Position numbers and translations under genes: made by a program. From Octopus bimaculoides (taxonomy: Eukaryota): a stretch of DNA of 64,000 nucleotides. The stretch lies in NCBI RefSeq assembly GCF_001194135.2, contig NC_069004.1, positions 1,935,661-1,999,660 on the forward strand, in the 5' to 3' direction. The notes under the pieces were generated by a model, which was given only the letters and a program-made list of their open reading frames with translations, had not been told where the DNA came from and did no database searches. Position 1 is the first letter of the stretch. The number at the start of each line of letters is the position of its first letter. This document shows positions 611 through 27,665 of the stretch, one piece after another.

Positions 611-639
<29 letters not shown>

Positions 640-652
<13 letters not shown>

Positions 653-2092: not shown

Positions 2093-2146
<54 letters not shown>

Positions 2147-4963: not shown

Positions 4964-4995
<32 letters not shown>

Positions 4996-5281
4996 TTTGT
5001 TTTGTTTTGTTTTTATTTGTGGGGCAACAAGGCTACCATTGGTTCTGCAGTTTCAGCATCTTAACAGCAGGACCATTAGCTTCAGAATTCCATTGGTTTT
5101 AAAATTGGACTAACATAACAAAATAACCATCTGATTCTTATTCTTGTAACAACTGGAGTTCATTTTTAGGGCTTTGTAAGTTCTCAAATATTTAGAATTT
5201 AGTGTTTGCTTGCTTTTCTTTTTTCTTTTTTGATGGTGGTGGTCATGTTTTGTAAATCATTTATGGCTTCACATTTTACAG

Positions 5282-7236
5282 GAACAGAAGATGATAAAAA
5301 CATCATGAATGTAGGTCCTCGAAAAAATATACAAGAGTATGCTAAAAACCAATGGCGTGGGGAAACTCCAGAAGCTCAAAGATATCTCGAAGTAAGTATT
5401 TATGTTGTTGTTATTTTTATTTTGAAGGTGAACTGGCAGAACCGTTAGCACGCTGGACGAAATGCTTAGCGGTATTTTGCCCATCACTACATCCCAAGTT
5501 CAAGTTCAGCCGAAGTTGACTTTGCCTTTCATCCTTTCGGTGTCGATAAATTAAGTACCAGTGAAACATCGGGGTCAATGTGATCGACTTAACCCCTCCC
5601 AACAAATTTCAGGTCTTGTGCCTAGAGTAGAAAGGGTTATTTTTATTTTGACATGGTGCTGGCATAGTCGTTACGGTTAAGAAGCTCTCTTTGCGACTAC
5701 ATAGTTTCAGGTTCAGTCCCACTGCACAGCACCTTGGGCAAGTGTCTTCTACTATAGCCCTGGGCCAACCAATGTGTTGTGAGTGAATTTGGTGAACAGA
5801 AACTGTGCAGAAGCTTAGCATACACATGCGTGCATATATCTTTGTGTTTGCTCCCACCCACAATTTGACACCTGTGCAGTACTGTTCAATTTAATGGTCT
5901 CAAGAGGCATTAAAAACATACATGCTGTCTGGAGATTTATAGAATTTATGAGAAGCAGAAGTGAAACATAAGCACAATATATCTAAGGCAGTCTATATCT
6001 AAATACATAAATCGGTCTATTAAGCAACAAGTTTTAACTTTTCATACTTTAATGAAGCTATCAAACTTGTATAACTTTTACTTCATAAACTTTCATTCTC
6101 TCCATATTTCAGGCTTATAATCAAGTACAACAGACTTTCGAATGCAACTACATACGAGTTATGCGTGGAGATAACTACTGCGGAATTCGTTCCTGTATAG
6201 TTCAGGTGTTAATAAACGGAATTGCAATGAAACAGGAATTTGCCACAGCAGAAATTGTAAAGAATGTAAGACAATATTTGCTATAATCTCAGCTGCAGAA
6301 TGGTTTATGAAGTTAATTTTTCCTTCTATCTTTCCCACTTAGTCTGGGTTGAGCAAACCAATGGCTTGTAAATAGCCTCGCAAACAATAATCAGATTGGT
6401 GATGGCCACAGCAGAGATAGGCAAAGTTTAATCTAACCTTAGCATTTGCTGTTTTATCTTTAGTGCCGTACATCCCAGGTTTTGTGATTAATGAGCCTCG
6501 TAATACTGCTGGTATGTGTGTGTGTGTAGAGTGAGAGAGAGAGAGAGAGGAAGGGTGGCTTGATGTCATAGTTGTATTTTGGGATGTTGTACATATAAAT
6601 AACTCTTGTTATTAATTAGAGGAGGGTGTAAAGGAGGCAAACTGGCAGACTTATTACAACATTGGACAAATGCCTAGTTGTATTTCTTTGACTCCTTACA
6701 TTCTGAGTTCAAATTCTGTCAGGGTGAGCTTTGCTTTTCATTTCTTTCTCATCATCATTAATTAACATCCATTTTCAATGCTGGCATGGGTTGGATGGTT
6801 TGATGGGAGCTGCACCAAGTTCCATTCATCTGTTCTGATATGCTTTATACAGCTGGATGCCCTTCCTAACGCCAACCACTTTACAGAGTGCACTGGGTGC
6901 TTTTTATGTGACACCAGCACCAGTGCTTTTTTACATGGAACTGGGTTAGTAAAGTACCAGTGAAGTACTGGGGGTCAATGCAGCCAACTAACCCCCTCCT
7001 CTAAATTACTGGCCTTGTGCCAAAATTAGAAAGAATTGTTAAATACTAAAGTGTGAGACGTGCATTATCTTACTAAGACTGAATGTATTCCTCCATAATT
7101 CCAGTTCACTTTTTTGTTGTTAAGTTTTGACATTTCTCTTTCCTAATGAAGTCTAACTTTATTAATCCATAAAGTGTTGCAGCTTTCAACCACTCAAATG
7201 CTTACCTCAAGTTTTAAGCACAAAAAACATTTACAC

Positions 7237-7293
<57 letters not shown>

Positions 7294-8320
7294 ATATCTG
7301 ATGACATGAAAGATGCAGGGACATATTAGCTTCATGCCAAATTTCAACAGTGCATATTCAGGGAACAAACAAATGTTTTTTAGTGCATCAAAGCAAGTAA
7401 TATAAGCTCAACTTCACATAAAGGACCCAGGGTGAATATCTTTTTTTAAAGACATTTTTGGTGGGGAAAAACACTGCAAGTTATATATCATCAAGCATAG
7501 TAAACCTGTTACATTTACACAAAGCTAAAAAGTTTAACATTTCATAAGTCATTTTAATGTGTATTTTTTTTTTCTGTTACTTGCATGCTTGGAAAGTTAT
7601 ATAGAATGTCATTGTCACTGCCTTGACCTTCTTAAAGTTAGATGTATATAATGCAAAGATTTGAAGCCTAGATATTTTCTCTGACATTCATCTAAATAAT
7701 GTCTATACTTTTCTAGCTTTTAAACCAATATTTGGAGGAACCAGAATGGGAACTAAAGCGGTGGTCTTTTGCCAGGCGTTTAAACTACACTGATGTGAAA
7801 GAAATGCTGTTCTCCTGTATTGATGAATTTTATTCACAGGTACTTTGATTTTTATCTCTATACATAACTAAAATATGAGTTTTGGTGCTTAAGAAAGAAA
7901 AGCTTTTCAGTTTTCTGTCATTTTTCATCGAAGTCTACTAAACTGACATTGACCCTCTTACGAACCTCCTCTCTCTGCTTCATTTGTTGACCTCTAAATG
8001 CCTTTAGATGTCCATCTTAACACCTAACATCATTGTCCACATTTGTCAGTCAGTCTCCAACTAAAACCTGATTCAGTTATTTTATGTTCTGTGCTGAAAG
8101 AGAATCACATATGTGTGTCATTATCATCATCCTCATCGTTTAACATCCACCTTCCATGCTGGCATGGGTGGGATGGTTTGACAGGAGCCAGCCAGGCAGA
8201 AACCTGCACCAGACTTCTGTGACTGTTTTGGCAGGGTTTTTCCAGCTGGATGCCCTTCCTAACATCACACACTCAGCAGAGTGGACTTGGTGCTTTTTAT
8301 GTGGCACAAGCACAAGTGAG

Positions 8321-8360
<40 letters not shown>

Positions 8361-9301
8361 AGTACATACAAACAAACAACAGGCTCCTTTCAGTTTCCAT
8401 TTCCCAAATCCACAAGACTTTAACCAACTCAATACTATAGTAGAAGACAATTGCCTGAGGTGTCACACAGTGGGTTTGAACCTAAGACCAGATGGTTGGG
8501 AAGCAAGTGTCTTAACCACACAGCCACACCTTGATAGAGTTATTTCTTATTGTTTCTCGGCAGATAAAACAAATATTTCTTTCTTTCTTTTATTTCAGCA
8601 TAACTTAGCTTTAGAGATGGACAAGACAGAGAGAGAAGACTGGGTGGAGGACCTCTTAAACAGAGAACCAATTGTTGATATAAAAATAATGGAAGCTGCC
8701 AAATTGCTTATGATGCTTGATATAATTGACATTTATAAAAACCAACAAGCCGAAGATTATCCATTGTTCGTCCATTATATTTTTTCTCGGGATACATCTG
8801 ACACTCCTGCAAAACTGTTGAAAAACATCCTGAATGCAGTCGGAGATTCTGGCAGTTTAGAACAGGTATGCATCCTTTAGAAATGATGATTTGATTTCTT
8901 AAAAAAATAATAAAGTGTGAGGAAGAGGAGAGATCTAACTTTTGAAACAGGGCCTTTCTTGCCTGAAATATCAGTCACTTCTTCATCACAGCAAATTTAT
9001 TCCATCTGGTAAACTGCTTTGTTTCTTGTTTATTTTTTAAGATGTTTGAATGAAGAATTTTTTGATGGCCTTAAGATGAAAGTTGATCATTAATTGTTAT
9101 GTTTTTTTTTTTCCTTTTCAGATTGATATGTGCCTCTTAGGACATGCACTCGGTGTAAAAATAACGGTGCCTCGTCTATATCGATATGGTAGAGATGATT
9201 TTATACATGGATTTCCTGATTTACTGAACCAAAATTGGGACGAGGTGTATCTCATTACCGAAGACGATAGACATTACAACATTATAATAAAAGATAACTG
9301 A
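5282..9301 (+). CDS. OTULIN: OTULIN-family deubiquitinase, paralog A (5 coding exons seen; 5' exons not located)
   Basis: GT-AG exons 5282-5391, 6113-6265, 7717-7839, 8599-8865 and 9122-9301 join in frame. The translation has IRVMRGDNYC (catalytic Cys), FSRDTSDTP, LNAVGDSGSLEQ and [11 protein letters not shown] (His/Asn), matching OTULIN RRVRGDNYC, FARDTS, GGLEQVEM and EDDRHYNI. The first exon seen starts in phase 1, so upstream exons exist. Confidence 0.92.
5425..5635 (+). mobile_element. SINE family A copy
   Basis: ctggcagaaccgttagcacg...gttgactttgcctttcatcc...aagtaccag. The family recurs more than 10 times in the window (e.g. ~4545, 12600, 12820, 14530, 24830, 33710, 38770, 40140, 55850, 57180). 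Confidence 0.75.
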
Positions 9302-10890
9302 GAAGAGACAATTCTATGATTACATTTCTAATTCTCTGTCGTTATCTCTCTTCTCTGCTGATGATGATTGAGAAGAGAAGCTAGCATCTTGTTCATCAGC
9401 TGGGAATCTACTGACACACTACATGTGGAGGCAACAGCTATTCGCATCAGTCAACTGTACAAGCTGCTCTACTATATGCTGCTAGCTGACCAGTGGATTA
9501 AAAACATTACTTTACCGGTTGATTTTTGGATGAAGATAACAAGACCAAGCTACACGTAGACACTATATCGTACGTCCACCACCCAGAAATGGAACCCACC
9601 TTAAACAATATGGCTGTGAAACATTAGCTTTTATTTATTTATTTAATTTTCTTTGCAAATTTTTTTTTTTTTTTAATCTTTTCTGTTTAAAATCACAACT
9701 GTGAAGATGGAAGAATCGGTGGAATTGGTTTCAAGTTACATGCAATGCAAAGGAAAGGAGGCACCAAGCAAAGACCATAGAAATACCTGTTCCCCATGTC
9801 TATATCTGTTAAAACTGTAGTGAACACTGTTGACATAAATGGTTCAGTATCTTATTAGAAACTTTTTTAGTTTCTGTTGCTGAAGTATCTTGGGGAAAAG
9901 GCCAATGTATAGATAATTGGTAGATCATTGGTATAATTGAATGCTCTTGTTGCCAGAGATTATAAAACTTTTTTCCTATTTTCAAGGACCATTTAAATTA
10001 TGTGGCTACAAGCTTATCACTATTCAGTTTGGGTTACTTGTGAGGAAATCTATTTTAAGGACAAGATGTATAAAAGTTAACGCAAAAAACATGAATACAC
10101 CTGTGCATTTTAAATGTTTCATTTAAAACAGGATTGTTTCTACTGATCTAAGAAACACCTTCTAGATGTCAAATTTTGCTCGATATACATATAATTCTTT
10201 AGATGTCACTGTTAACCTTATTTATATTTTTGATAATTTTTCGTATATAGTTGACATCAATTTAGTCGTAATCAAGCAGAACCTTTAATGGCAGGGTCCT
10301 GTTTCATTGACAAATGAAGAGGATTGCACGTTAGCAAATTTTTTAAATGTAACGACTTTTGGTTAGATTCTACAGCAGTGACTTTACAATTAGTTTTGTA
10401 GTAAATCAGATCTTTTATTCTGCTNNNNNNNNNNCTAGTTTGCAATCCTATCCCATCCACCCCACAAAAACAGCAAAATCTAGCCTCCAGACACTAGATA
10501 AAGCTGGATGCATTTAAATACAGCACGTGTGTTTGTGGCTGTGTGCGTGTGCATGTGTGTGCGTGTGTGTGACGCTACTCAGTAGCACATGTTGCGCTGA
10601 ATGTAAATATCCTCTTGCTTCCTCTTTTTATATATATACATATAAAACATTTTGTTTATTAACTGTCTCAACCACTGTGCCTCTCCTTGTTGAAATACAT
10701 TTGGGACAAAGATGTGTTGAACTTGTTGGTTACTGTAGTGTAAGAACTATGGTCTGTCTAGAACATTCCTATGAACATGACATCTACTATTCTGTGTGCG
10801 AGAATCAAAAGCACACCAGTTTAGTTTATTTATCTGAAAAGGGTTGTTGCTTCATTTATTCAAATATAAATAAAGTACATTTTTTAAAAA
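9302..10890 (+). other. Probable 3' UTR of OTULIN paralog A, with AATAAA at 10869-10874
   Basis: Follows the stop codon and is collinear with 26143-27630 downstream of paralog B. Confidence 0.55.
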
Positions 10891-10954
10891 GTGTCTGAGT
10901 GCTTGACTTTTGCTTTGCCTATAGATTTACAAAGATGGATTATATCAACCAATT

Positions 10955-11240
10955 TATTTGTTCCAACATGGAAGTGTTACAAATAAGAAGCATGGAACAG
11001 ACTACCTGCATCAGTTGTTAGCTGCCGAGACATTGCATCCTTTAAAACCTCCAAGCTTCCTGAAATTCGCCAACACTACACCTGATATCCCACACCCTCC
11101 ATACACATGCACACATGTATATCATGACTCATACACTGTTCCCCTTTCTGACTTTTGTACATGATTCTATGTACTGTACATGCACCTTTGATGAGTTGTG
11201 GTGCACCTGAGCACAATTCACAAGAATTTCATTATTATTA
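10955..11240 (+). mobile_element. CR1-like LINE 3' end fragment
   Basis: Degenerate translation ...AWNRLPASVVSCRDIASFKT...PEIRQHYT resembles the CR1 ORF2 C-terminal WN.LP motif. Confidence 0.6.
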
Positions 11241-13049
11241 TTATTATTTTGAACAGGCTGATTACAATATAGAAGAAGAGTTTTATAAGTTGGTTTTCCA
11301 TGAGGAGTGTAAATTTGAGCAAAAGGAAAGGGTGGGGAAAATTTGTTACTTGGACTGAACGAAAGTAAATGAGGAAGGAATTAAAAGTTGCGAGAGCCAA
11401 AAACTCCTGCTTAATTAGGGAAAACCTTTGTTGTGTCTTCAATGCACTGCAAGCATATGTGATACATGATGACGACGATGACACAGCTGAAAAGAGTAAC
11501 CACACACACACACACACACACACGCATACATCATCATCATTGTTTAATGTCCACTTTTCTGTGCTGGCATGGGTGAGACTGAATTTGTTGAGGTACATTT
11601 CCTATGGCCAGATGCCTTTCCGGTTGCCAACCCCTCTCAACTGTTTCAAAACTAGGTTATATTTCTCCATGGAAGACCGGAAATGAATAACATTGCTTGT
11701 ATAACAGTGATGTTCCTTAACAATCATCATAGTGGCAGCAGAAGATGCTGTCGTTGTTGTAAAAAAAGATATCTCCACTGTTTCCAACAGCAGAAATATC
11801 CACGAAAGAGTTATATATAATGAACTTATTGTATACAGTGTTCAGATAAGATATGGGGACATGCACCTTTGCAGCGCGTCCTTGCATCCACCGTTTGTCT
11901 GGCCCCATCTCAGCGAAATACTTCATCTGCTTGACACATGTGACATGTGTCCGACCAACACGAGCCGTCATCCCAACTGGTTCCCCAGAGAAGAGAACAC
12001 GATACGCAGGACTCATTACGAAAAATCAAACAACATGACCAAACAATCTGAACTTGACCGAAATCCTACAGCAGGATGCATCACAGTTTCTGAATATCTC
12101 CGTTGGGTTGGTAATTGAGAAAAATTATTAAACGTCAAGTAGCAAGCAAGGGAGACAACTTCAGATATTGACGGTTGAAAAATATCAAACTTATTTTTAA
12201 TAAATAATGAAATATACCCTTTATATTTATCAATAAACCTTATTTTTGGTACCATACAAAGCATTCTTTTTCTCAAATAACTGTTTCTTTTTGTAGGCTA
12301 GTTACTATCGTCAGCGAGCAAATGTCAAGGTAAATGGCAGGTAAAAAATATTTAAAGAAATTAAAGTTGAAGTCGTTTCCCTTGCATTTCAGGTCGGGAA
12401 TGATGTTAGTTAAATTGAAATATTTTTATTTTCTAAATCACAAGTCAAGTTACTTTTCGTGTTGAAAGTAGAGAAAATAATATACTTAAATGCATTCTGT
12501 TATTATTAATGAATGGTGATCTACTTGAAGCAACATAAATTGACAATAGTTTTGCTCTGAGATCGTTATAAAATAACGCTTTCAAACTAGGGCACAGGGC
12601 TAGCAATTTTAGGGGCGAGTGATAGTCGATTACATCGACTCCAGTGCTTGACTGGTGCTTCATTTTATCGACCCCGAAAGGATGAAAGGCAGAGCTAACA
12701 TCGGCAGGATTTGAACTGAGAACGTAAGGAGCCGGAATAAATGCTGCTATACATTTTTATCCGGTGCGATAATGATTCTATCAGCTCGCCACATTTAATA
12801 ATTGTTTCAAACGTTGACACAAGGCCAGAAATTTTAGGGGAGCAAGTTAGACGATAACCTCGTCTCCTGTACTTGACTGGTACTTTATTTTATTGGCTAC
12901 AAAAAGATGAGAGGTAACGCTGAGCTTGGATTTGAACTGAGAACGTAAAGAGCCGTATCTGAATACTGCAAGGCATTTTGTCCAAAAATGGGACAGAGGA
13001 CCAGCACAAATACGTACTGAGCGAAAAATGGTCATACATCAACATATTC

Positions 13050-14290
13050 GAGACTTGTGCTGCTGTAAACAAGACATGCTTCTGGAAGGCACTGAGGAGG
13101 GTGGAATTGCCAGTGTATGAATCAAAGCCTTCCCAGCAAGCACGAGAACCTCGTATGAGCCTAAAATGACATCATAAAAAATTTAGAGAAATGCTCCGAG
13201 CGGGTTACATTCGAAACCATGTACTTTCTTTCAAGGATAAAGGAGAGGTAGAACCAAAAGAATTATAGACCTACCACCTGCCTGCCAGCAATGTCCACGA
13301 CTATTACCTCCATTGTTAGCGTGAGAATCTAAAGCTGCCTCTACAAAAACATATCGCCAGCAGAACAGAAGCAGTGTAAGAAAGGAAGCTACGGATGCAA
13401 AAACAAGCTTCTGATCAATATAATCGTATTATAAGAAGTTAAATCGAATAAAAGAAACTTGCTAACAGTATGGAATGACAAGAAGAAGACAGTGTGCCCC
13501 GCTCTTGAATAGAGGAAGCCTCAAGATTAGCAGAGTCTATCAAGCAACTCTGAAATTGATCGCAGTATGAAGTGCTGGGAGACCGCTCTGAATCTTTGTT
13601 AAAAACAGAAAACGTGCGTCTTCGAATTAAAAACATCAAATATACTTCCTGAAGGAAAAAGCAACACACTTCAAAAAAAAAAAAGCGTTTGATAACCCTG
13701 AAACTCCACCTGTAGGAAACGGGGTGAATACCATTTGCTCAAAAAGAGTAAAACAAGCATCAAGATGCCGCTGCCAGCTTCACATGTAGAAAATTTGGGG
13801 AGTGGAGATAAGATAGTGCACGTGAAGTACTCTAAATTGATTTATACATCGACTAAATAAAGACACATTAAAAGTTTAAGACTGACTATAGAGACGGGTC
13901 TTCATAATCACTGCACAATATTAGTCTTGCAACCAGATCCTATCACCATCGCATCATCAAGGATGGAATGAATCTGCAATACAGGATCTGTGGAAAAGAT
14001 GGATAAATTAATTGCCACATTGTCTTTGGATGCGTAAAACTAACAGAGACTATATACATCCAGAAGCGTTGTACCTGTGGGCGTTAAAATATTGTCTTTG
14101 GATGTCTAAAACTAGCTGAGGCTTAAACTAGACATCCAGAAGTGGTTCAAGGCAGCGGTGTACCTGTGGGCGTTAATATATTAAGATGGCTGAGAAGTAG
14201 GATGGATCGTCAGCCAAACACGGTTATTGACAATAAGAGATACGTATCTCTATGCAGTCAGATAAAAGCCAACAAGCCTATCAACATGAT
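13050..14290 (+). mobile_element. Degenerate, internally deleted R4/Dong-clade (RLE) non-LTR retrotransposon
   Basis: Broken translations in order: NYRPTTCL...EQKQCKKGSYGCKNKLLIN...RNLLTVWNDKKK (RT), FIITAQ, RIIKDG...RICG...HIVFGC (CCHC knuckle), QPNTVIDNK...IKANKP (RLE). Many stops and frameshifts. Confidence 0.7.
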
Positions 14291-14490
14291 TAGTGAATGG
14301 TGGGGAGGTTATGAGGAGGGGAGAGGGATGCACCAGTACCTGGCTGGTGTTTTTTTTTTCAGCTGAGTACACTGGAACAATAGGAAACGAAGTGCCATTG
14401 TTCAAGGACACAATGCGTCACACGTCCCAGGAATCGAACCAAGGACCTTATCATCATGAACACACCTTACCATTAGACTGAGCACCGTAA
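14290..14490 (-). mobile_element. tRNA-derived SINE (box A/box B head)
   Basis: Reverse complement ggtgctcagtctaatggtaagg...ggttcgattcctgg, followed by a ttgttccagtgtactcagctg core. Confidence 0.65.
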
Positions 14491-14971
14491 CAGCAACATC
14501 GATAACAACGTTAATTCTTTTTGCTTTCGACATAAGACCTGAAATTTTGTGGGGATGAAAGCAAGTCGATTCCATTACCCCAGTAATCGACTGGTACTTA
14601 TTTTATCGACCACAAAAGGATGAAAGGCGAAGTGAACCTCAGCAGGATTTGAACTCGGAAAGTGAAGAGCTGAGAGAAATGCCGCAAAGCATTTTCCCTG
14701 ACGAACTAACGATTCTGCCAGCACGTGCCAAGGGGGGATGTGGGAGATGATACAGACAGACATAAAACGAGGGGGTGGGGTTACACAGGAAGGGAATGAT
14801 TTTAGGAAAAAAGTATACGATCTTTGCTTCCCAACTACATGGCTCTGAGTTCAGTCCCACTGCGTGGCACCTTGGGCAAGTGTCTTCTACCATGACCTCA
14901 GGCAGATCAAAGCCTTGTGAATGGATTTAGTAGACGGAAACTGAAANNNNNNNNNNNNNNNNNNNNNNNNN

Positions 14972-15013
<42 letters not shown>

Positions 15014-15342
15014 TCCGTGTGAAACCGGTTAGTAAGATCGGCTGTAATGGATCTTAATACTGCGGTTTACTTGAATAGGTGTTTAGAACTCATAACTCGG
15101 TGGGGAATCTAATGTACCTTGTTCCATTCACTGCAACTGTAGGTTCAAGTCCAGCCGAATACCCTTTTCTGTGTTATGAGGATAAAATGTGGTGCAAATA
15201 TTTGTTACAGCATTTCCATTTCCAATTTGGTCGTACCGTTGCCGACTCATATTAAAGAAAGATTTATATATCCGATTTCATGCCATACTGAAGAATATTT
15301 AAAGCGTTTACAATATGTAGGCAGCTATTTCCGTTCGACACG

Positions 15343-15572
15343 TTCTTTACTGCCCACGGGGGGCTAAACACAGAGGGGACAAACAAGGACAGACAAAGGG
15401 ATTAAGTCGATTACATCAGCCCCATTGCATATAACTGGTACTTATTTAATCGACCCCGAAAGGATGAAAGGCAAAGTCGACCTCGGCGGAATTTGAACTC
15501 AGAACGTAACGGCAGACGAAATACTGCAAAGCATTTCGCCCGGCGTACTAACGATTCTGCCAGCTCGCCGCC
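15343..15572 (-). mobile_element. SINE family A, near full-length young copy
   Basis: Reverse complement reads ggcgagctggcagaatcgttagtacgccgggcgaaatg...gaggtcgactttgcctttcatcc...gtgggcagtaaagaa. Confidence 0.8.
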
Positions 15573-16515
15573 CTAAATGATATAAGTACCAGTGGTGCAC
15601 TAGGGTCGATGTAATCGACAGTCTCCGCCATACCCCGCCCCCACCAATATTCCAAGCNNNNNNNNNNNNNNNNNNNNNNNNNNNNNNNNNNNNNNNNNNN
15701 NNNNNNNNNNNNNNNNNNNNNNNNNNNNNNNNNNNNNNNNNNNNNNNNNNNNNNNNNNNNNNNNNNNNNNNNNNNNNNNNNNNNNNNNNNNNNNNNNNNN
15801 NNNNNNNNNNNNNNNNNNNNNNNNNNNNNNNNNNNNNNNNNNNNNNNNNNNNNNNNNNNNNNNNNNNNNNNNNNNNNNNNNNNNNNNNNNNNNNNNNNNN
15901 NNNNNNNNNNNNNNNNNNNNNNNNNNNNNNNNNNNNNNNNNNNNNNNNNNNNNNNNNNNNNNNNNNNNNNNNNNNNNNNNNNNNNNNNNNNNNNNNNNNN
16001 NNNNNNNNNNNNNNNNNNNNNNNNNNNNNNNNNNNNNNNNNNNNNNNNNNNNNNNNNNNNNNNNNNNNNNNNNNNNNNNNNNNNNNNNNNNNNNNNNNNN
16101 NNNNNNNNNNNNNNNNNNNNNNNNNNNNNNNNNNNNNNNNNNNNNNNNNNNNNNNNNNNNNNNNNNNNNNNNNNNNNNNNNNNNNNNNNNNNNNNNNNNN
16201 NNNNNNNNNNNNNNNNNNNNNNNNNNNNNNNNNNNNNNNNNNNNNNNNNNNNNNNNNNNNNNNNNNNNNNNNNNNNNNNNNNNNNNNNNNNNNNNNNNNN
16301 NNNNNNNNNNNNNNNNNNNNNNNNNNNNNNNNNNNNNNNNNNNNNNNNNNNNNNNNNNNNNNNNNNNNNNNNNNNNNNNNNNNNNNNNNNNNNNNNNNNN
16401 NNNNNNNNNNNNNNNNNNNNNNNNNNNNNNNNNNNNNNNNNNNNNNNNNNNNNNNNNNNNNNNNNNNNNNNNNNNNNNNNNNNNNNNNNNNNNNNNNNNN
16501 NNNNNNNNNNNNNNN

Positions 16516-16547
<32 letters not shown>

Positions 16548-17871
16548 CCAGTGCACGAAACTGTAGGCCCTTGGGTCACTCTAACTTCTGCCGATTATTA
16601 ATAATATATAGAGATAGATATAGACGTGTGTGTATTATGTGTATATACGTATGTGCGTGTGTATATATATATATGTGTGTGTGTGTGTGTATTTATATTA
16701 TATATATATATTTCTATGTATGTATATGTGTGTGTATGTGTGTATAATTATATATATATGTATGTGTGTGTGTGTGTGTGTACACTTAGACAAAATTTTG
16801 GCCGTTTGACATATTTTCGAATAAATGGTAGCTGCTGCATCATGTGAGCTTCTAGCTTTTAACTGTGGAATCTCTAACGTAAAATTCGGCAACAAATCCT
16901 AGAAAGGATCTTTGATTGCTTTCAATTATTTCCCTCCTTGTTCGTATGAATGAGCGCAGCCAAAATCATTCTGCCATACACCAGTTCTGCAGACCAATAT
17001 TTCACACACCTACACTTTTAGCATCAAACGACCGCATCTTTTTCTAATTTTTTTCAGAGCAATTAAGAGCATGGAATTTATTGTTTAACACTAAATTCAA
17101 CTTTGATCGAACATATTTATTATCATTTATTTCAGAGGTGACCAACAACTTTATTATTTTTTTCTTTATTAAGAGCTACATGATATAATATAATGTAGCT
17201 TTTTTATTTTAGATGGTTTAGGGCAATTTTAGACTGTTATTTCTAGAGGGTTCGACCAACCACACAGAGGTACAGTCGTCGGCGGTTAAGGTTACAATAG
17301 AAAGTTGGGATTTATTCTGCGCACCAATCTCTTGAATCGCTTGAAGAAATTGGTGATCTTAAAGTATAAAACTCTATTTTCACTTTCACAAAAGAAGTTT
17401 TCACTCTTTTTATGAATCCCCATTAGTAATTTATCAACTTTTACATTGATCTGAAGCAGCTTAGCATAACCATGTAAGATACAGGCGACTATGCTTAGAA
17501 ACTGAGATTATTGGAGACGTCTTCTTGCTGCCCGAGGTTATAGGCCAACTGTACGAGAGTGACTAACACTAAAACGTTACTGGTATTTCCTCCTACCTTT
17601 AGTGTTCTCGTTGTTTAGTACCATTAGTTGTGTTCTGTGATTATTTATTTCGTGGATCTGCTATTCCATAAAATAAAAATACATTTGATTTGCTGCAAAT
17701 TTCGCATATGTGTCTGGTGGTGAGCGAGCATTGTCCCCAAATTCTTCTTGTGTTATTATAATGAATGCTATCTCCATTTGTATAAAACTGCTGGTTCGTA
17801 AAACGATAGTTGTGTCTGTAGTTTAAAGTCTGAAACACGTCTGATTCATTTGCGTAGACGGGGCTGCACGG

Positions 17872-18537
17872 ATGAGCGAAGTTAAAGGTATGTATCCTGC
17901 TAAATGTACGTTCCAACGGCGAACATCCCAACTCTTTAAATTCTTTCAACCTGTGACCAACGCGTCTTTTCAAAGCGTTTCAACTGTAATCCTCCCGTGG
18001 TTTTTTGAAGTGTTTCGACCATGACCAATGCGTCTTTTAAAAGCGTTTCAACCGTGATCGTCCCCTGTTCCAAATGTGACCATCTTGTCTTTTGTTTATG
18101 TCCAAATCTTTTTTATGTCCCGCCCTACTCTCTGTGTGTCCTTCTCTCCTTTTAAGACACATTGGATAAGATAGTCTGAAATACCTGCCTGGAGAATGAA
18201 AGGTCGTATAATCATGGGAGGACAGCCTTTGAACATAGGTCGGAGACCATGGCGTTTATGCCTACTTTCACTTTTCAGCCAGCAGCTACTTTCATTATGG
18301 TGTGTGTGTGTGTGTTGTGTGTTGTTTTTCACTTGTTTCAATCATTGGACCTCGACCATGCTGGAGCACTGCCTTGAAGGGTTTTAATCAAACAAATCGA
18401 TCCCACTACTTTTTGTTTGAAGTCTAATATTTAGTCTATCGGTTATGGGGACGTTCACAAACCAACACCAGTTGCCAAACGATAGGAGAGACAAACACCA
18501 CACACGCGCACACACATGTATATACGAAGCCTGTCGC

Positions 18538-18576
<39 letters not shown>

Positions 18577-18577
18577 G

Positions 18578-18627
<50 letters not shown>

Positions 18628-21600
18628 ACACGTGTGTGTATGTAATACGTCTATGTGTGTGTGTGTGTGTGTATTTCTTATCTTTTACTTGCTTCAGTTA
18701 TTGGACTGCAGCCATGGGGTGGGGGTCATCGCTTGGAGGGTTTTAGTAGAAGGAATCAACTTCAGAACATGCTGAACTTTTCCAGTCACATGGTTCTGGG
18801 TTCCATCCCACTGCGTGGCACCTTGGGCAAGTGTCTTCTACCATAGCCTCAGGCCAACCAAAGACTTGTGGGTGGATTTGGTAGACGAAAACTGAAAGAA
18901 GCCTGTCATATATATTTCCTTAAGCAAGACACTTCATTTCACATTGCTCCAGTCCACTCAGCTGGCAAAAATTGAGGCTGTATCCATAATTCAAAAGGTC
19001 CAGCCCTGTCACATTCTCTCCCTGAGAAATGCATTTAGGGTCGGATGTCTATGGAGTACTGAGCCACCTGCACTTTAATTTGACGAGCAGACTGTTCCGT
19101 TGATTGGATCAACTGGAACATTCCTCAACGTAACTGATGAAGAGCCAGGCAGAATGGCAAAACTTGGAGCAAAGCAAATAATACTATCAGTAATGTCATG
19201 TAAAAGAAATTCAAAAACTTTGAGGGAGAACATGACATATTTCTTTTTCAAAATGGTGAAGCGCAAACCAAATAAAGCTGTTGATGATGTGACTTCAGCA
19301 ACAAACACATGTCTGTTTCATCTTTCCCAATGTGCTTTACTTGATTCTGTCCTTGGACTATGGCCATGCTGGGGCACTGCCTCAAAAGGTTCTAGTCAAA
19401 GAAATTCACCCCAGTACTTATTATTTTAAAGCTTGGTACTAATTCTGTCACTCTCTTTCGCTAAACCACTAAGTTGTGGGGACATAAATAAACCAACACC
19501 AGTTGTCAAGCAGTGGTGGGGAGCAAATGCAAGCACAAAGGCACCCACAGATATAGACATATATATGTGTGTGTGTGATGGGATTCTTTCAGTTTCCATC
19601 TACCAACTCCACTCACAACGCCTTGATCGGCTTGAGGCTATAATAGCAGACATTTGCCCAAGGTGCCATGCAGTGAGATTGAGCCTGGAACCATGTGGTT
19701 GACAAGCAAACTTCTTACCACATGGCCACACCTATTCCTCAAAATTAGATGCATTAGAGCTTTTCATCCATCAAATCCACTCTCGAGGTTTTGGTCAGTC
19801 CAAGGCCAAAGTAGAGATTTGCCCTAAGTGTGTGCACGCGCATGTGTGTGTGTATGTGTGCGTGCATGCGTGCAAGTTTTTTTTTATACAAGGAAAAGGA
19901 TATCAGTGATTTGTTCTTCACTATTCAGCTACACACACACACACAGAGTCTGAAACTTTAGCATAAAATCACCATTAAAAGCAATTAATTTATATCTAAT
20001 TTTTTTTTTCAACTTTTAGGAGATACTGGAAGAAAAGATTTAGAAAAAGGTAAATATAGCTACAACCTGCACACACACACACACAAACACACACACACAT
20101 CATTTACTTAATTATTTATTATTTGTTGTTCTTAAGCATTTTTGTTAACATTTTTCATTGTCTGTGTAACACTGCAAATAATTTTTTGACAATGTTCAAT
20201 TTAAAAAAATTTTTTTTTTGTGAACCAAAAAAGTCCCTGTACCCCATCTTCACCCCTAAACATTGTTATTAGATTATAGTGAGCAATACATGCTTTCAAT
20301 AAAATAATTAATAATGATTAATTTTTGCCATTAGAATTGTTGTTTTTTTAATTATAGTATTTTCATTCAAACATAAAATGCTTTCTTCGTAATAATAATA
20401 ATAATAATCCTTTCTACTATAGGCACCAGGCCTGAAATTTTAGTGCAAATATAGCAGATTATGGCCAATACAATCAGAATCTGAAAGCAAAATGAATAAA
20501 TTACTCATTGTGACATTCTTAAAACATTGCAAGAGGCACAATTTTAAGAAAATACCATCTAAAACTGTTTTCTTAAAAATCAGCCATTACTTTTACACTA
20601 ACCTGATATGTGCAGTAAATTAAGAAGGTACTATATTCGATGACGTACGAGACACACTTTTTTTCCCAAAAATGGTCTCAGTTAATCACCATTTTGAATG
20701 TGAATTCCTTGCCTTGTGGTTGTATTGCCAGCTAGTTTTCATCACAATTTTGTTATTCCCGTTTGCTTTTTCTCCCAAGATGACTAGTAAGGGAATAATG
20801 TAGTGAAGCCTAAATTTGAAACCACGAAGGTTTAGTATCTAGGATCGAACTACATCAGATTGGGCGACTGCCCTGAATACTAAACAATCACTTTGCAGCA
20901 ATATTATTGGAAGTTCCAGATGTGACCACATAAATGGGGTCCATGAAAGCAAGAGCATGCCAGAATCAGTGCAGTGGTTAGAGAAGGTCCCAGAGAAGAT
21001 CGATGACGACAAGATTCTTGGTCCCTGCTCGACTTGTGTTTAAATGAATCTCTTCACCTACAATGCACTTCTCCAAGCATGTACCATGAACACCATATCA
21101 TTACCTCTTACCACATATAAATAAGCAGCTTGCCAGTTCTTAATCAGAGGTGCACATAGGTGAAACAGACAGGTCCATAAGAAACTGGTTCCCTGGTTGC
21201 TGCTCAACCCTGAGTTAAAGGAATCATTGACTGCGAAGAACAGTATTTCCCCACCTCTCACATGAAGCCATTCTTATCTGTCATTAATAAACTTCATTTA
21301 CTGCTGGCAGGCCACAACACAGTCCTGATAGGCATCCGTGTAATTAATGTAAATATTGCGATAAGCACATATATAAATAAATGTTTATCAAATACAGTTC
21401 AGAGTTTGTTTTAATGTGGGACAGCACGTAGGTTAAACCGCATATCAATTAATCAAGTCCTGTCTAGAAAGTCTCACAATGGTAAGCCACAACATTCATA
21501 GCCAAGTCCAACATGTCTTTTAACCATCCATATAGGACTTCATACCTAAAGATAAGAAATGCTTACATGCATCTGTGGTATGCATATTGTTAATATGAAA

Positions 21601-24600
21601 TACTTTCTGTTCAATGTCAAGTGTACACAACTGATGTTGTTTTAAATCAAAAAAGCTACCTATGTATCATACATGGTAGTTGGCACCCTCTTGTAATAAT
21701 TGAAATTCATCTTCAGGATTTTATAAATTCTCAAATATTAGGAACTGATGCTTTCTTCTTTTGCTTTTGTTTCTTTTCTTTTTTTTTTTTAATTATTTGT
21801 TTTAATAATATTTTACAGGGAGAGATGATGAGAAAAATGTTATAAATGTAGGCCCCCAACAAAATATACAAGAATATGGTAAAACTCGATGGCCTAGAGA
21901 CAACCCAGTATCTCAGAAATATCGAGAGGTAAATATTTATATCAGTATTGCTCGTTTGTTTGCTTTTTCACTTGTTAGTTTTTGTTTTTTTTGTTTGTTT
22001 GTTTATTTTTGTGTGACTTGTCACGTCACTCAGCTGTCAAAAATGAACCGTTCCGTAATCAAAGGGCTGGCTTTGTCACGCTCTGTGTCACACTGAGAAC
22101 TATGTTAAGGATAGTCATGTCTGTCGGGTGCTTGTTAATTTCACAGACCAACTGGAGCACTCGTTGTAACCTGAAACACCAGCAGGCAGTATGTATGTAA
22201 TGTAAGGCGCGTGACTTAGTAGTTAAGATATTCAGCTCATGATTGTAGGGTCACGAGTTCAATTCCCGGTGGCTTGACATTTTATTTCATGTTGCTCCAG
22301 TCCACTCAGCTGGCAAAAATGAGTCGTACTTGTATTTCGAGGGGCCAACCTTGTCACACTCTGTGTCATGCTGAATCTCCCTGAGAACTGTGGCTGAGTA
22401 CTTTGCATTTGTCTGGAGATAATATCTCTTATGGATGTGTCAATAAGAGATATCATAATTTGTGTTTTGGGGATGTATCTACATTAAGTTTGATACATTC
22501 CTTCACAAAACAGGCAAAGGAACAAATTTACTCGTTCCATATTTCAATGCAACTATTAAACTTATGTAATTCTTTCTCCTTGTATTTCAGGTTTATGATT
22601 TCATATTTCAGGCTTATATTCTCTTCATCTTTCAGGCTTATGATTTCGTACAACAGACTTTCAACTGCACCTACATACGAGTTATACGTGGAGATAACTA
22701 TTGTGGAATCCGTTCCTGTATAGTTCAACTGCTAATAAATGGAATTACAATAAAACAGGAATTTGCTACACCAGAAATTGTAAAGAATGTAAGAGAGAAA
22801 AATATTTTCCATAATAACTTGTTGTGTGCAACAAAAGCAGATTAGATTAAAATAGTCATCTGTGTATCATACTTAATGCAGACATCACAAAAAGGCAAAT
22901 TAACTGCTGCATTTGTCTGGAGATAATATCTCTTATGGATGTGTCAATAAGAGATATCATAATTTGTGTTTTGGGGATGTATCTACATTAAGTATGATAC
23001 ACAAATGACTATTTATCACAATCTCAATAATTTTCTAGTACTTTTGAAGTTTTGTTAATGTAAACTTTTGCACAATTTTTTTTTCTTTCCTGTCTCTTCT
23101 AAGTTTTAATTTCTCTCTCTTTAAGCAGGTGTGGATCTTGTTTTCTAATTAGACTGGGACAGCTAAAATAAATGGATTCACAAGTTGGAACAAGAAAAAA
23201 TTGTTTGAAACTTCAATACTTTGGAAATAGATTATCAACTTTTATATTCAATGTTTCAGAAGTTCTTTTTGATGAAGTAATATTTTGCAATAACAATTTC
23301 TTTTCAGCAACCTTTTCTATCTCACTTTAGGTCACAATCTACTTTTCCCACAATCTTATTTGAAAAAACAGGTAAGGACTATTAGCAGGGAGGGTTTCCG
23401 GCTTCAAAACAATGTTCCAACAAAACATATTCATCTAACCCCAGCTAGCATGCAAAAACGGACATAAAAACAAATGAACAAATTTCCCATGATGCTTATT
23501 GATTGACCGGATTAGCAGACAAGTTCTTAGAAGAAATGTTTTATCTCTTGATATCCTTTCAGTATTATATTAAAAATAATTTCTATTGATTTCCTTTCGG
23601 TTAAATTTATATAACGGAAGGTTTCAAGTGTAGGTATTTTCTCTGATATTCATGTAAATAAATGTCTATACCTTTGTGATACATTTCTAGCTTTTAAACC
23701 AATATTTGGAGGAACCAGAATGGGAACTAAAAAGGTGGTCTTTTGCCAGGCGTTTAAACTACACTGATGTGAAAGAAATGCTGTTTTCTTGTATTGATGA
23801 ATTTTACTCACAGGTACTTTGATTTTTATCACTATTAATATAGTAAATCTTGAATGCAGAATAGCTGTGATAATAGAAGATTAGGTAAATACCCTCGGAA
23901 AATGGAAAATAGTGAACAGCAAGCTTCTACAGAGAATCGAATGAGGTATTTGCTTGTAATAGTTCCACCTTTGTTAATGAGAGGTAGAAGTCATTAGAAA
24001 GAATTCAATACAAAGATTTTTTTTATATTTTACTACACTACAGCAAAATATATCATTATTAAACACAGTGTCTCAGTGAAGAATATTAGTTGCTAAAACT
24101 ACAGATTAAAAAAATTGCTGCTCTTTTCATTTTCAGATCATGTTACAATCAGTTTCAACCTTTCAAAGTCATTGAAATATTTTCTTGTAATTGCTAAGTG
24201 GATTTGTATTTGATACTATTGCCAGGAGTTTTCTGTTTTCACTTAACACGAGCTGTCGGTTAACAATAGCTAAGCCTTCAGCTGCTTGTGCCTGTAAGGT
24301 CAAAAATATATTATTGTTTAAAGTAATTTCTTAGTGTTTCCTGGCAGATAAAGTATTTTTTCTTTCTTTTTTTCATTTCAGCATAACTTAGCTTTAGAGA
24401 TGGACAAGACAGAGAGAGAAGACTGGGTGGAGGACCTCTTAAACAGAGAACCAATTGTCGATATAAAAATAATGGAAGCTGCCAAATTACTTATGTTGCT
24501 TGATATAATTGACATTTATAAAAACCAACAAGCTGTTGATTATCCCTTCTTTGTCCAGTTTATATTTGCTCGTGACACATCTCACACTCCTGCGGACTTG

Positions 24601-26142
24601 TTAAAAAACATTTTGAATGCAGTCGGAGACAATGATGGCTTAGAACAGGTATGAATTCTGTAGAAATGACAACTTGCTTCTTTTAAAAAGGATTCCGAGT
24701 CTGTAAAATGTTTCTAAGTTTATCATCGTAATCATCATTGGAATTCTAGATTTTTCCATCTAATGAGAATATTATTATGAAGTGGAATATGGTAGCTGTT
24801 TGGAAATAATTACAAAATAGATAAGGGTGGTGGGGTGGCAGAATTGTTAGTATGTCAGAGAAAATGCCTTGCTGCATTTATTTCAGTTATTTACATTCCG
24901 AGTTCAAACCCTGCTGTGGTCGACTTTGTCTTTCATCCCTCCAGGGTCGATTAAATAAAGGTCCAGTCAAGTACTGAGGATGATAGTATAAGCTTATCCC
25001 TTATTACCAGTTTTGTGTCTAAATTAAAGACAAAAAAATAAATTTGAAATAGATATAATAGCCACTTGTGTTAAGTGTACTTCATAAACCTGTGCCATTA
25101 TGAAGGCTTTTAAATTTCTCAGATCTCTATATTGAGAGACTTGTTCTGGTTGCCTCTGCCTCATCCAATCTGTCCCTTCTCTCACTGCTGTTCCCATCCA
25201 TTATGGGACATCTTTCTCAGCAGAACTATCCCTATCCTCCCCGCTGCCCTGCCAAGGTGTCGTCTACCTCGGCAGATCTGTATCTGTCCTCACTGCTGCC
25301 CTGCCAAGGTGTCGTCTACCTCAATGGATCAATCTCTATTCTCGCTGCTTCTGTCATATACAATGGGATATTGATCCAACTGACCCACATTTCTTTGTGT
25401 CTTCGTTCACCGTACTCCACATTATCTAGCTCTCTTGTGGATTATCGAAACAACACGACAGTTTGGAGGTTTAAAATCAGGGACATGGCAAGCTGTGTGG
25501 TAAGGAGTTTGCTTTCCAATCACATGGTTCCATGGTCAATCCCACTTTACGTCACTTTGGATATGTCTTCTATTAAGACTTCAGGCCAGCCAAAGCCTTG
25601 TGAGCAAATTTGGTAGATGGAAACTGAATGAAGCTTGTCGTATATACATATATATATATATATAGGTGTGGGTGTGTGTCTATGTTTGTCCCCCACCACC
25701 GCATGACAACTGGTGAGAGTTTGTTTATGTCCACATAACATTAGCAGTTTGGCAAGAGAGACTGATACATCAAGCACCAAGTTTTTTAAAAAAGTCCTGG
25801 GGTCCATTCATCTAAAAATTTCTCAAGGTACTGTCCCAGCATTGCCACAGCCTAATTACTGCAACACGTCAAAAATATAGGGTCGGAGTTGAATGAAGAA
25901 TTTGCAAATGAGTTTAATTGAAATTTGATCTTTAAGTACTTTCTTTTTTTCTTTTTTTACAGATTGATATGTGCCTCTTAGGACATGCGCTCGGTGTACA
26001 AATAACGGTGCCTCGTCTATATCGATATGGGAGAGAGGATTTTATACTAAAATTTCCTGATTTGCCGGACAAAAACTGGGACAAGGTGTATCTCATTACC
26101 GAAGACGATAGACATTACAACATTATAATAAAAGATAACTGA
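17872..26142 (+). CDS. OTULIN: OTULIN-family deubiquitinase, paralog B (7 coding exons, ~292 aa model)
   Basis: Exons 17872-17887 (ATG AGC GAA GTT AAA G|gtatgt), 20020-20049, 21819-21928, 22636-22788, 23691-23813, 24382-24648 and 25963-26142 (TGA). The last five exons have the same lengths as in paralog A (110/153/123/267/180 nt). RGDNYC and EDDRHYN are intact. The first two exons are less certain than the last five. Confidence 0.9.
20020..20049 (+). CDS. 30-nt phase1-phase1 microexon of OTULIN paralog B ([11 protein letters not shown])
   Basis: Polypyrimidine tract tttttttttcaacttttag|, donor AAG|gtaaat, open frame, and phases compatible with both neighbouring exons. Confidence 0.55.
22205..22390 (+). 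mobile_element. tRNA-derived SINE with gctccagtccactcagctggcaaaaa core
   Basis: ggcgcgtgacttagtagttaag...gagttcaattcccgg head. Related cores at ~18925-19170 and ~22010-22190. Confidence 0.6.
22405..22993 (+). repeat. 85-bp direct repeats (22405-22489, 22909-22993) flanking the catalytic exon of OTULIN B
   Basis: Identical GCATTTGTCTGGAGATAATATCTCTTATGG...CTACATTAAGT units 504 bp apart. Confidence 0.9.
25490..25875 (+). mobile_element. tRNA-headed SINE family C with internal (TA)n/(TG)n microsatellite, full length
   Basis: Head gtgtggtaag...catggttcc...cccact...ggtagatggaaactgaa, then a central microsatellite, then tail ...ccccagcat(g)gcc. Confidence 0.7.
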
Positions 26143-27630
26143 GAAGAGACAATTCTATGATTACATTTCTAATTCTCTGTCGTTATCTCTCTTCTCTGCT
26201 GATGATGATTGAGAAGAGAAGCTAGCATCTTGTTCATCAGCTGGGAATCTACTGCCACACTACATGTGGAGGCAACAGCTATTCGCATCAGTCAACTGTA
26301 CAAGCTGCTCTACTATATGCTGCTAGCTGACCAGTGGATTAAAAACATTACTTTACAAGTGGATTTTTGGATGAAGATAACAAGACTGAGCTACACACAG
26401 ACACTACACCATATGACCACCACCCAGAAACGGAACCCACCTTAAACAATATGGCTGTGAAACTTTAGCTTTTATTTATTTATTTATTTTTTACTTTGCA
26501 GAATTTTATTTATTTATTCCTTTTTTTGATTGCAACCACAACTGCAAAGACGGAGGGATTTGNNNNNNNNNNNNNNNNNNNNNNNNNNNNNNNNNNNNNN
26601 NNNNNNNNNNNNNNNNNNNNNNNNNNNNNNNNNNNNNNNNNNNNNNNNNNNNNNNNNNNNNNNNNNNNNNNNNNNNNNNNNNNNNNNNNNNNNNNNNNNN
26701 NNNNNNNNNNNNNNNNNNNNNNNNNNNNNNNNNNNNNNNNNNNNNNNNNNNNNNNNNNNNNNNNNNCCCCCCATGTCTGTATCTGTTAAAACTATAGTGA
26801 ACACTGTTGACATAAATGGTTCAAAACCATGCTCGAATCATTGAATAAAACTTTTTAATTTCTGTTGCTGAGGTATTTTGGAAGAAAGCCAATCTAAAAG
26901 CCATTCACATATTTGAATACTCATGTTGCCAGAGATTATCAAAAGTTTTCCTATTTTCAAGGACCATTTAAATTGTGTGGCTACAAGCTTATCACTATTC
27001 AGTTTGGGTTACTGGTGGGGAAATCTATTTTAAGGACAAGATGCGTAAAAGTTAACAAAACTGGATCGTTTCTACTGATCTAAGAAACACCTTCTAGATG
27101 TCAAATTTTGCTCGATANNNNNNNNNNGACAGAGTTTGGTCACATTTGCATTTAATTTAAATTGAGACAATCTAGAAGAAAAAATAAGGAAATAGAGCCT
27201 CTAAGTTTTAGCCAATCTGGATTGCAACCTCTTCTTATCCCTTCAAAAAAACGTGGAATTCTAACCTCCAGACACGAGACACTGCTGTTTTACATTTAAA
27301 TGCAGCATATGTGTTTGTGTCTGTGTGTGTGTGATGCTACGCAACAGCTCATGTGCTGAATGTAAATATCCTTGTTTCATCCCTTTTTTTTTTTTTTTTT
27401 TGATATATTAACTGTCTCAACCACTGTGCCTCTCCTTGTTGAAATACATTTGGGACAAAGATGTGTTGAACTTGTTGGTTACTGTAGTGTAAGAACTATG
27501 GTCTGTCTAGAACATTCCTTTCAACATGACGTCTACTATTCTGTGTGCGAGAATCAAAAGCACACCAGTTTAGTTTATTTATCTGAAAAGGGTTGTTGCT
27601 TCATTTATTCAAATATAAAGTACATTTTTT
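26143..27630 (+). other. Probable 3' UTR of OTULIN paralog B
   Basis: Collinear with 9302-10890. Ends with TATAAA (27614-27619) where paralog A has AATAAA. Confidence 0.5.
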
Positions 27631-27665
27631 AAAAACCATCAGTGTTTTGACTTTTATTTCATATG

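Follow-up and report, generated by a model that had tools for sequence, protein, structure and literature searches.

A 64-kb stretch of Octopus bimaculoides DNA, hereafter the window, carries two tandem copies (A and B) of a five-exon cassette encoding the catalytic ovarian tumour (OTU) domain of OTULIN. Positions 8196-36142 of the window match CM046624.1:1943856-1971802 of assembly GCA_001194135.2 with 100% identity over the 27,947 bases compared. The two copies probably belong to separate, selectively maintained OTULIN-family genes, which would have arisen by duplication in the octopod stem, exchanged sequence by gene conversion, and come to encode a membrane-tethered protein (A) and a cytosolic protein (B) with an altered helix. 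This account is built on the observed gene structures, family membership, catalytic residues, fold, orthologs, phylogenetic tree and conversion tracts.

The removal of linear ubiquitin chains is the dedicated task of OTULIN, an enzyme essential in mammals. To our knowledge, almost nothing is known about it outside the vertebrates, and a literature search returned no dedicated study of OTULIN in octopus or molluscs. The usual protostome OTULIN appears to be a protein of about 900 amino acids (aa) with a predicted membrane anchor, mostly left as 'uncharacterized' or mislabelled in databases. To this, octopods would have added a short second gene lacking the anchor, in which the catalytic centre is kept and the substrate-positioning helix is rebuilt. 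The A/B pair may thereby serve as a natural experiment on the determinants of Met1 specificity, and as a clean example of paralogs converting in some exons and diverging in another. Both genes are already present in RefSeq, and the locus is a gene-family duplication carried by public annotation.

Comparison of the first part of the window with the second by BLASTN gave seven collinear blocks (5142-10911 versus 21689-27655), and an independent repeat finder returned identical exon-block pairs. Both copies are collinear five-exon sets on the forward strand with exons of the same sizes (110/153/123/267/180 nucleotides, nt), flanked throughout by AG acceptors and GT donors and joined in a single open frame to TGA. 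The offsets from A to B are 16,537 and 16,841 bp, and no third OTULIN copy was found in the window by tblastn. The initial annotation had described two collinear OTULIN-family genes with five exons of equal size, intact RGDNYC and DDRHYN motifs and a spacing of 16.5-16.8 kb, and its coordinates are exact; its attribution of the DNA to an octopus is also borne out.

The 276-residue products of both copies match Pfam PF16218 Peptidase_C101 (MEROPS C101), copy A with an E-value of 5.5e-66 (223 bits) and copy B with 1.7e-61 (208 bits), far above the cutoff of 27 bits, and both matches cover profile positions 3-265 of 265. The closest solved structures by sequence are, for both copies, human OTULIN chains (E 1e-39), followed by OTULINL. 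An AlphaFold2 model of copy B (mean predicted local distance difference test score 85.3, predicted template modelling score 0.86) superimposes best on OTULINL 6drm with a template modelling (TM) score of 0.88, followed by OTULIN 3znv with 0.87, while otubains reach about 0.6. The fold comparison rests on this copy B model, to which copy A is 83% identical. Human OTULIN (FAM105B) thus shares the Pfam family and the fold with the octopus domains, at a sequence identity of about 33-35%.

The residues on which human OTULIN depends are retained as well. Cys129, His339 and Asn341 of the catalytic triad, the autoinhibitory Asp336, the Asn-coordinating Tyr91 and the S1' residue Trp96 (human numbering) are kept in A, in B and in all orthologs examined, including those of O. 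vulgaris and Argonauta; the roles of these residues were described by Keusekotten et al. (PMC3690481). Copies A and B are therefore most likely catalytically equipped OTULIN-type domains, acting as cysteine deubiquitinases by the OTULIN mechanism, in which a Cys-His-Asn triad restrained by Asp336 would be turned on by the substrate. The earlier view of both copies as real OTULIN-family domains with a full catalytic triad is confirmed by the Pfam match and the residue alignment.

The two genes are not equivalent. Copy A is only the last five exons of LOC106875898 and not a stand-alone gene: its product forms the C-terminal 276 aa of XP_014779690.1, a 945-aa entry named 'uncharacterized protein LOC106875898 isoform X1', and the annotated gene with the 945-aa product ends at the copy A stop (window 9301). 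Its first OTU exon is spliced from upstream LOC106875898 exons outside the window, which encode the N-terminal 669 aa. When the upstream exons were sought in window 1-5281, no convincing open reading frame (ORF) and no homology were found; the N-terminal exons of A are therefore placed outside the window. The isoforms of LOC106875898 reach 945 aa, and the protein runs from a conserved module at the N-terminus through a predicted transmembrane helix (AKAAGFLCVLGIGLGIGSLLIYRLF) and a linker of about 500 aa to the OTU domain. The linker is rich in Ser, Asp and Glu, with a heptad-like segment resembling a coiled coil. The long gene is of considerable size, its O. vulgaris ortholog spanning about 149 kb and the Argonauta long-gene range about 159 kb.

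An exhaustive HMMER search with copy A revealed 317 relatives, the closest of which are mostly 640-1250 aa long and carry the OTULIN domain at their very C-terminal end. The long form occurs, among others, in squid or cuttlefish, oysters, mussels, limpets, snails, mantis shrimp, locusts and thrips. A hydrophobic motif of helix length is common to the long forms (AKAAGFLCVLGIGLGIGSLLIYRLF in octopus, VKASGVILLLGVGSLVCYKLY in locust), and is preceded by a conserved module in molluscs. The anchor pattern [KR]A[AST]G..C.LG[IV]G...[YC][KR]L[YF], together with a C-terminal OTU domain, is present in the 945-aa copy A product; the copy B product lacks the anchor. A hidden Markov model (HMM) of the anchor region retrieved further long forms at E-values down to 5e-14, as compared to 2 or more for shuffled controls. 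Pfam recognises no domain in the long proteins besides the OTULIN domain. The long OTULINs of Mytilus (CAG2239059.1), Saccostrea (LOC134279138), Patella (LOC126824694) and Schistocerca (LOC124555767) resemble the copy A gene in combining the anchor motif, a low-complexity linker and a C-terminal Peptidase_C101 domain with an intact triad. These comparisons indicate that the long, predicted membrane-anchored form is the standard architecture in molluscs and in arthropods (crustaceans and insects). Since this architecture is common to other protostomes, copy A appears to be the direct descendant of the ancestral protostome gene. Among the mussel (Mytilus) long orthologs, some are labelled OTULIN in RefSeq, while others are named 'serine-rich adhesin for platelets-like' or 'dentin sialophosphoprotein-like', which is misleading and presumably due to the low-complexity linker.

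As compared to human OTULIN, a protein of 352 aa, the copy A domain forms the C-terminal part of a longer protein (945 aa) in which a membrane helix is predicted. In this respect it recalls vertebrate OTULINL (FAM105A), the paralog with which OTULIN is paired and whose N-terminus has a membrane-localisation motif (PMC7862380), as the copy A protein likewise pairs a predicted helix with the OTULIN fold. Human OTULINL resides at the endoplasmic reticulum and is a pseudo-deubiquitinase (PMC7862380). The HMM of the protostome anchor did not match lungfish OTULINL (E <= 10), and homology of the protostome anchor and the vertebrate OTULINL motif would be speculation. Tethering of copy A is weakened by two points: its membrane helix is predicted from hydrophobicity and conservation only, and among the RefSeq isoforms of the octopus long gene several begin just before the helix and others lack it.

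Copy B belongs to a short gene. Its coding sequence (18196-18238 and 20020-20049, joined to the five OTU exons) translates exactly to XP_052832307.1, a 301-aa protein named 'ubiquitin thioesterase otulin-like'. Across octopods the product has 291-301 aa and no predicted membrane helix, and the gene has two alternative ATG-bearing first exons, conserved from Octopus to Argonauta. Copy B would have originated by tandem duplication, of which only the five OTU exons and the 3' untranslated region (UTR) are still recognisably paralogous, and would have gained its own promoter and short 5' exons after the duplication. Copy A would accordingly act at the membrane and copy B in the cytosol, the localisation of each being judged from its architecture. 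The picture of two equivalent five-exon genes, as first drawn, cannot be retained: A supplies the 3' end of a gene whose product has 945 aa, and B is a 301-aa derivative with new 5' exons.

Decapodiform transcript contigs comprise a 944-aa and a 319-aa form (P0172 and P0173) with the same OTU sequence, the short form starting in the intron before the first OTU exon. Copy A has an equivalent of this decapodiform short-form start, namely an in-frame ATG (MASHFTG, 5263-5281) in the intron directly before its OTU exon 1. The long gene may also make an OTU-only product from an intronic start, and the contigs faintly suggest that the ancestral gene already gave long and short products, later divided between the two octopod genes.

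The foremost rival explanation is that the locus is one transcription unit, with A and B as alternative 3' exon cassettes and the short B mRNAs as minor products of an internal promoter. The two copies lie on the same strand and B starts 6-9 kb past the putative poly(A) site of A; in the O. vulgaris annotation the two are fused to a single locus with a predicted chimeric product; and the decapodiform contigs suggest that a single exon block yields both long and short isoforms. The chimeric O. vulgaris model (P0010, 897 aa), in which A exons 1 and 3 are joined to B exons 4-5 and the Cys exon is skipped, also speaks against two separate genes. It is either a prediction artefact or a read-through transcript, and read-through or chimeric transcripts are possible, which tells against full separation; lacking the catalytic exon, it looks like a prediction artefact. 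Copy A, however, has its own stop and a conserved 3'UTR with an AATAAA element, copy B has its two conserved first exons, and in RefSeq the two are distinct genes in both O. bimaculoides and O. sinensis. A single unit is thus an improbable explanation, though it fares best among the rivals.

Orthologs of both copies are found in other octopods. In O. vulgaris (948 aa, P0165) and O. sinensis (877 aa, P0158) the A-type domain is on a long protein, and the B-type on proteins of 291-301 aa. Argonauta hians likewise has a long protein (P0210, 986 aa) and a short one (P0002, 291 aa). No overlap of its long gene with the 10 kb upstream of the short gene was seen among the called genes; the long gene therefore ends at a distance of more than 10 kb, and the two represent separate exon sets. 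The first OTU exon (36 aa) separates the types across species, with 18-23 differences between types as compared to 7-11 among A-types and 0-6 among B-types. OTU exon 3, on the other hand, sorts by lineage (0-1 differences within a genus, 5-7 between genera), and exons 2, 4 and 5 show no clear A/B sorting and partly sort by lineage.

A neighbour-joining tree of 25 OTU domains (272 columns, 200 bootstraps) places the eight octopod sequences in one clade (100%), sister to the decapodiform long forms (100%). The B sequences, including Argonauta B, form a clade with 98% bootstrap support, and vertebrate OTULIN and lungfish OTULINL form a separate clade (100%). Since Argonauta has both types and the octopod clade is sister to the decapodiforms, the duplication is dated to the octopod stem, that is, after the decapodiform split and before the split of Octopus and Argonauta, and is independent of the vertebrate OTULIN/OTULINL split. 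The other protostomes with the long form have one gene with several isoforms per species in cluster listings, which are not a genome-wide count, and a second short gene is seen only in octopods. The independence from the vertebrate split, proposed in the initial annotation, is upheld by the octopod clade lying inside the cephalopods and the vertebrates forming their own. The lineage-specific duplication that it had assumed is indeed octopod-specific, but it is older and wider than a species-level event, as O. vulgaris, O. sinensis and Argonauta hians carry both types; an old and widespread duplication, which would have spoken against that annotation, is in part what was found, the event being octopod-wide and old.

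The contrast drawn there with an inactive vertebrate OTULINL was overstated. OTULIN is found in vertebrates and selected invertebrate lineages (Keusekotten et al., PMC3690481); its origin has been placed in Bilateria, and FAM105A/OTULINL lost its catalytic residues only during mammalian evolution (Vlasschaert et al., PMC5381560). Human OTULINL has Asp139, His350 and His352 at the catalytic positions and is inactive, whereas the octopus copies keep Cys, His and Asn. Lungfish OTULINL (P0045), however, has both GDNYC and DDRHYN; octopus is therefore not alone in having two catalytically intact paralogs.

A plain reading of the synonymous divergence of A and B would suggest a recent duplication in the genus Octopus, without gene conversion. 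Over the whole coding sequence the two copies differ by 0.334 synonymous (dS) and 0.084 non-synonymous (dN) substitutions per site, with a dN/dS ratio (omega) of 0.25, while either copy as compared to the Argonauta short gene gives a dS of about 2 or more; exons 2 and 3 also group by lineage. The differences are, however, strongly uneven along the coding sequence. There are 35 in the first 138 nt (25%) and about 9 in nt 244-535, a segment with about 60 differing sites between B and Argonauta B. No identical coding tract between A and B exceeds 83 nt, a length with P = 0.002 if the differences were spread uniformly. In the first 200 nt after the stop (9302-9501 versus 26143-26342), A and B are identical at 199 of 200 positions, above the neighbouring exon 5 (166/180), while over the same stretch the comparison of copy B with O. 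vulgaris B shows 9 mismatches and 17 positions with gaps; the tract was therefore homogenised after the two Octopus species separated. This uneven divergence together with the 3'UTR tract is a signature of conversion. Moreover, Argonauta has A-type and B-type first OTU exons in separate genes, and the B clade includes Argonauta B. A recent duplication is therefore quite unlikely, somewhat more so than a single transcription unit.

The low divergence of A and B, and with it the modest dS, thus appears to reflect repeated gene conversion between the cassettes. The interiors of the introns score only slightly above shuffled controls in global alignment and are unalignable. Homology between A and B extends from about 140 bp upstream of the first OTU exon to the AATAAA-containing element about 1.6 kb past the stop, and this limitation to segments likely to be constrained or converted fits an old duplication. 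Some evidence runs counter to the octopod-stem origin and the conversion that would have followed it. Exon 5 of Argonauta A and B encodes identical amino acids; the decapodiform sequences are known from database clusters only, so that a hidden B-type copy there is conceivable; and conversion in O. vulgaris and Argonauta is deduced from protein models only. Dating of the duplication by the dS of 0.33 was rejected, as the exon-wise comparison and the 3'UTR tract point to gene conversion. An apparent faster evolution of A, obtained with the Argonauta short gene as outgroup, was withdrawn because that gene is the B ortholog.

The ends of the two 3' blocks (10650-10890 and 27399-27640) share about 220 nt with 97% identity and an AATAAA-like signal, after which homology stops abruptly. 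Against O. vulgaris B, its last 130 nt show only 1 mismatch and 7 positions with gaps. A 3'UTR of 1.6 kb probably finishes with this conserved segment, and the copy A transcript probably ends at the AATAAA-containing element.

The main difference between the two catalytic domains concerns the S1' helix. The motif EW[KR]G.T..A is conserved from human to insects, and copy A (QWRGETPEA) keeps the wider pattern. The helix of copy B (RWPRDNPVS) replaces the otherwise invariant Gly98 and Thr100 and keeps Trp96, and is identical in Octopus and Argonauta. In human OTULIN, the substitutions W96A and TQK100-102AAA weaken the binding of Met1-diubiquitin (PMC3690481). These observations suggest that copy B remodelled the surface orienting the proximal ubiquitin, and its identity across Octopus and Argonauta suggests that the new helix was then held under constraint. 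The chain or substrate preference of copy B may differ from the classic Met1 specificity.

Not all of the replaced residues set B apart from A. Human TQK100-102 corresponds to TPE in A and NPV in B, so that Q101 and K102 differ in both copies. The S1 residue Leu259 is Tyr in A and Phe in B, and Glu314 is replaced by Asp in both, as it is in the majority of the protostome sequences compared; these changes are conservative. A simple regular-expression scan of P0161 (the 945-aa copy A product), P0008 (the copy B product), P0009, P0002 and P0210 did not find the PUB-interacting motif (PIM; D-[LM]-Y around Tyr56, which binds HOIP). A C-terminal PDZ-binding motif was also not found, the octopus C-terminus being ...IIIKDN. 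As S1 and S1' residues are replaced and the PIM was not found, the Met1 specificity of A and B and their coupling to LUBAC, the complex that assembles linear ubiquitin chains, are assumptions. The locus by itself is no demonstration of an expanded linear-ubiquitin system, as had been proposed from the two copies.

A more far-reaching proposal, which is tentative and rather doubtful, is that octopods split one ancestral gene, giving a tethered and probably a short form, into two genes whose cores are kept matched by conversion. B would then be a deubiquitinase with a preference other than Met1-diubiquitin, and a soluble OTULIN would have evolved twice, in vertebrates and in octopods, from a tethered ancestor.

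Another rival holds that one of the copies has lost its catalytic activity or is decaying, the faster-evolving A domain and the S1'-altered B being the most plausible candidates, and persists as a ubiquitin binder or a pseudo-enzyme like human OTULINL, which provides a precedent (PMC7862380). The departure of the B helix from an otherwise invariant motif and the L259Y replacement in Octopus A are in line with such a loss. The triad, Asp336 and Tyr91 are, however, intact in both copies and all orthologs; no frameshift, premature stop or broken splice site is present in either; and the identity of the new B helix between Octopus and Argonauta indicates constraint. Omega is well below 1 in the comparison of A with B and falls to 0.077 between B and O. 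vulgaris B (dS 0.138), and the orthologs of copy A differ at only 14 of 276 aa. The chance that either copy is dead is therefore slim, and two maintained enzymes are the preferred reading.

The last rival, an assembly or haplotype artefact in which alleles or a collapsed or expanded repeat were placed in tandem across N gaps, has in its favour three gaps between the copies and a highly fragmented scaffold, but is effectively refuted by the divergence of the copies (11.7% of coding nucleotides and 16.7% of amino acids, with unalignable intron interiors and different 5' structures), by the separate ortholog of each copy in O. vulgaris, O. sinensis and Argonauta, by the collinearity of the inter-copy DNA (10965-15656 and 16516-21675) with gapless O. 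vulgaris sequence upstream of the B gene, and by the contig 10435-14946, which joins the tail of the A 3' block to intergenic DNA. An artefact of this kind, named at the outset as one that would refute the finding, is excluded.

The window has a G+C content of 36.6% and contains 15 N-gaps. All coding exons lie on gap-free sequence (A within 4771-10424, B within 16516-26562), and the gaps between the copies are all non-coding. The gap in the A 3'UTR (10425-10434), from which about 90 bp are probably missing, has flanks collinear both with the paralogous UTR of B and with gapless O. vulgaris DNA. The gap at 14947-14971 is intergenic and lies within repeats, and O. vulgaris is about 1.7 kb longer between the nearest aligned flanks. 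The third gap between the copies is of more consequence. Its O. vulgaris counterpart contains, at L001 10001-10043, the first coding exon of the B ortholog, with an ATG at 10001, the sequence MATSSEFEDLCTTP and a GT donor, while an exon encoding MATSSEFEDLCTTP (MATS...) for copy B was not found anywhere in the window. Since the O. vulgaris interval holds that exon, the gap most probably hides the ancestral first exon of copy B together with its promoter. The features of the locus are listed in Table 1.

Table 1. Position of OTULIN-related features in the window
Feature	Position	Strand	Remarks
Copy A OTU exon 1	5282..5391	+	110 nt; enters in phase 1; acceptor ttttacag/GA; residues 669-706 of the 945-aa product
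Copy A exon 1 content	5350-5376	+	S1' helix QWRGETPEA; exon includes the Tyr91/Trp96 equivalents
Copy A OTU exon 2	6113..6265	+	catalytic Cys; RGDNYC at 6164-6181
Copy A OTU exon 3	7717..7839	+	amino acids identical to B exon 3
Copy A OTU exon 4	8599..8865	+	helical arm / S1 site
Copy A OTU exon 5	9122..9301	+	DDRHYN at 9263-9280 (Asp336/His339/Asn341 equivalents); TGA stop
Copy A 3'UTR-like block	9302..10890	+	paralogous to 26143-27640; contains gap 10425-10434; ends at the AATAAA-containing element also kept in O. vulgaris
Assembly gap	15658..16515	.	syntenic with O. vulgaris locus L001 9541-10496 (gapless)
Copy B alternative first coding exon	18196..18238	+	used by RefSeq XP_052832307.1
Copy B micro-exon	20020..20049	+	30 nt; DTGRKDLEK; skipped in O. 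sinensis isoform X3 and the Argonauta model
Copy B OTU exon 1	21819..21928	+	derived S1' helix RWPRDNPVS at 21887-21913
Copy B OTU exon 2	22636..22788	+	catalytic Cys; RGDNYC at 22687-22704
Copy B OTU exon 3	23691..23813	+	
Copy B OTU exon 4	24382..24648	+	
Copy B OTU exon 5	25963..26142	+	DDRHYN at 26104-26121; TGA stop
Copy B 3'UTR-like block	26143..27640	+	paralogous to the A block; contains gaps 26563-26766 and 27118-27127

Gaps of 10 N occur at matching positions of the two 3' blocks (10425-10434 in A and 27118-27127 in B). As compared to O. vulgaris, the gap at 26563-26766 (204 N) is over-sized, about 65 bp being expected, and that at 27118-27127 (10 N) is under-sized, with about 250 bp expected. 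Assembly gaps tend to adjoin elements of the short interspersed nuclear element (SINE) family and the second repeat family listed below, and (TA)n/(TG)n runs.

Several repeats are found in the introns and the intergenic DNA. A tRNA-like SINE family with the core GGATTTGAACTCAGAAC is present at 12662-12757, 14600-14695 and 15444-15539, with related copies at 2591-2707, 5421-5537 and 33696-33816, and a second repeat family occurs at 5678-5805, 14823-14946, 18788-18897 and 19587-19717. The introns flanking the Cys exon of copy B contain direct repeats of 94 nt (22404-22497 and 22908-23001), which are 99% identical and have an internal palindrome, resembling a miniature inverted-repeat transposable element. 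Downstream of copy B, an ORF at 28085-28483, considered as a transposase fragment, gave no Pfam match. Further along, on the strand of copy B, is HAUS2 (window ~29964-35605; 213-aa product, PF15003), a neighbour conserved on this side of B in each of the three species compared (O. bimaculoides, O. vulgaris and Argonauta hians).

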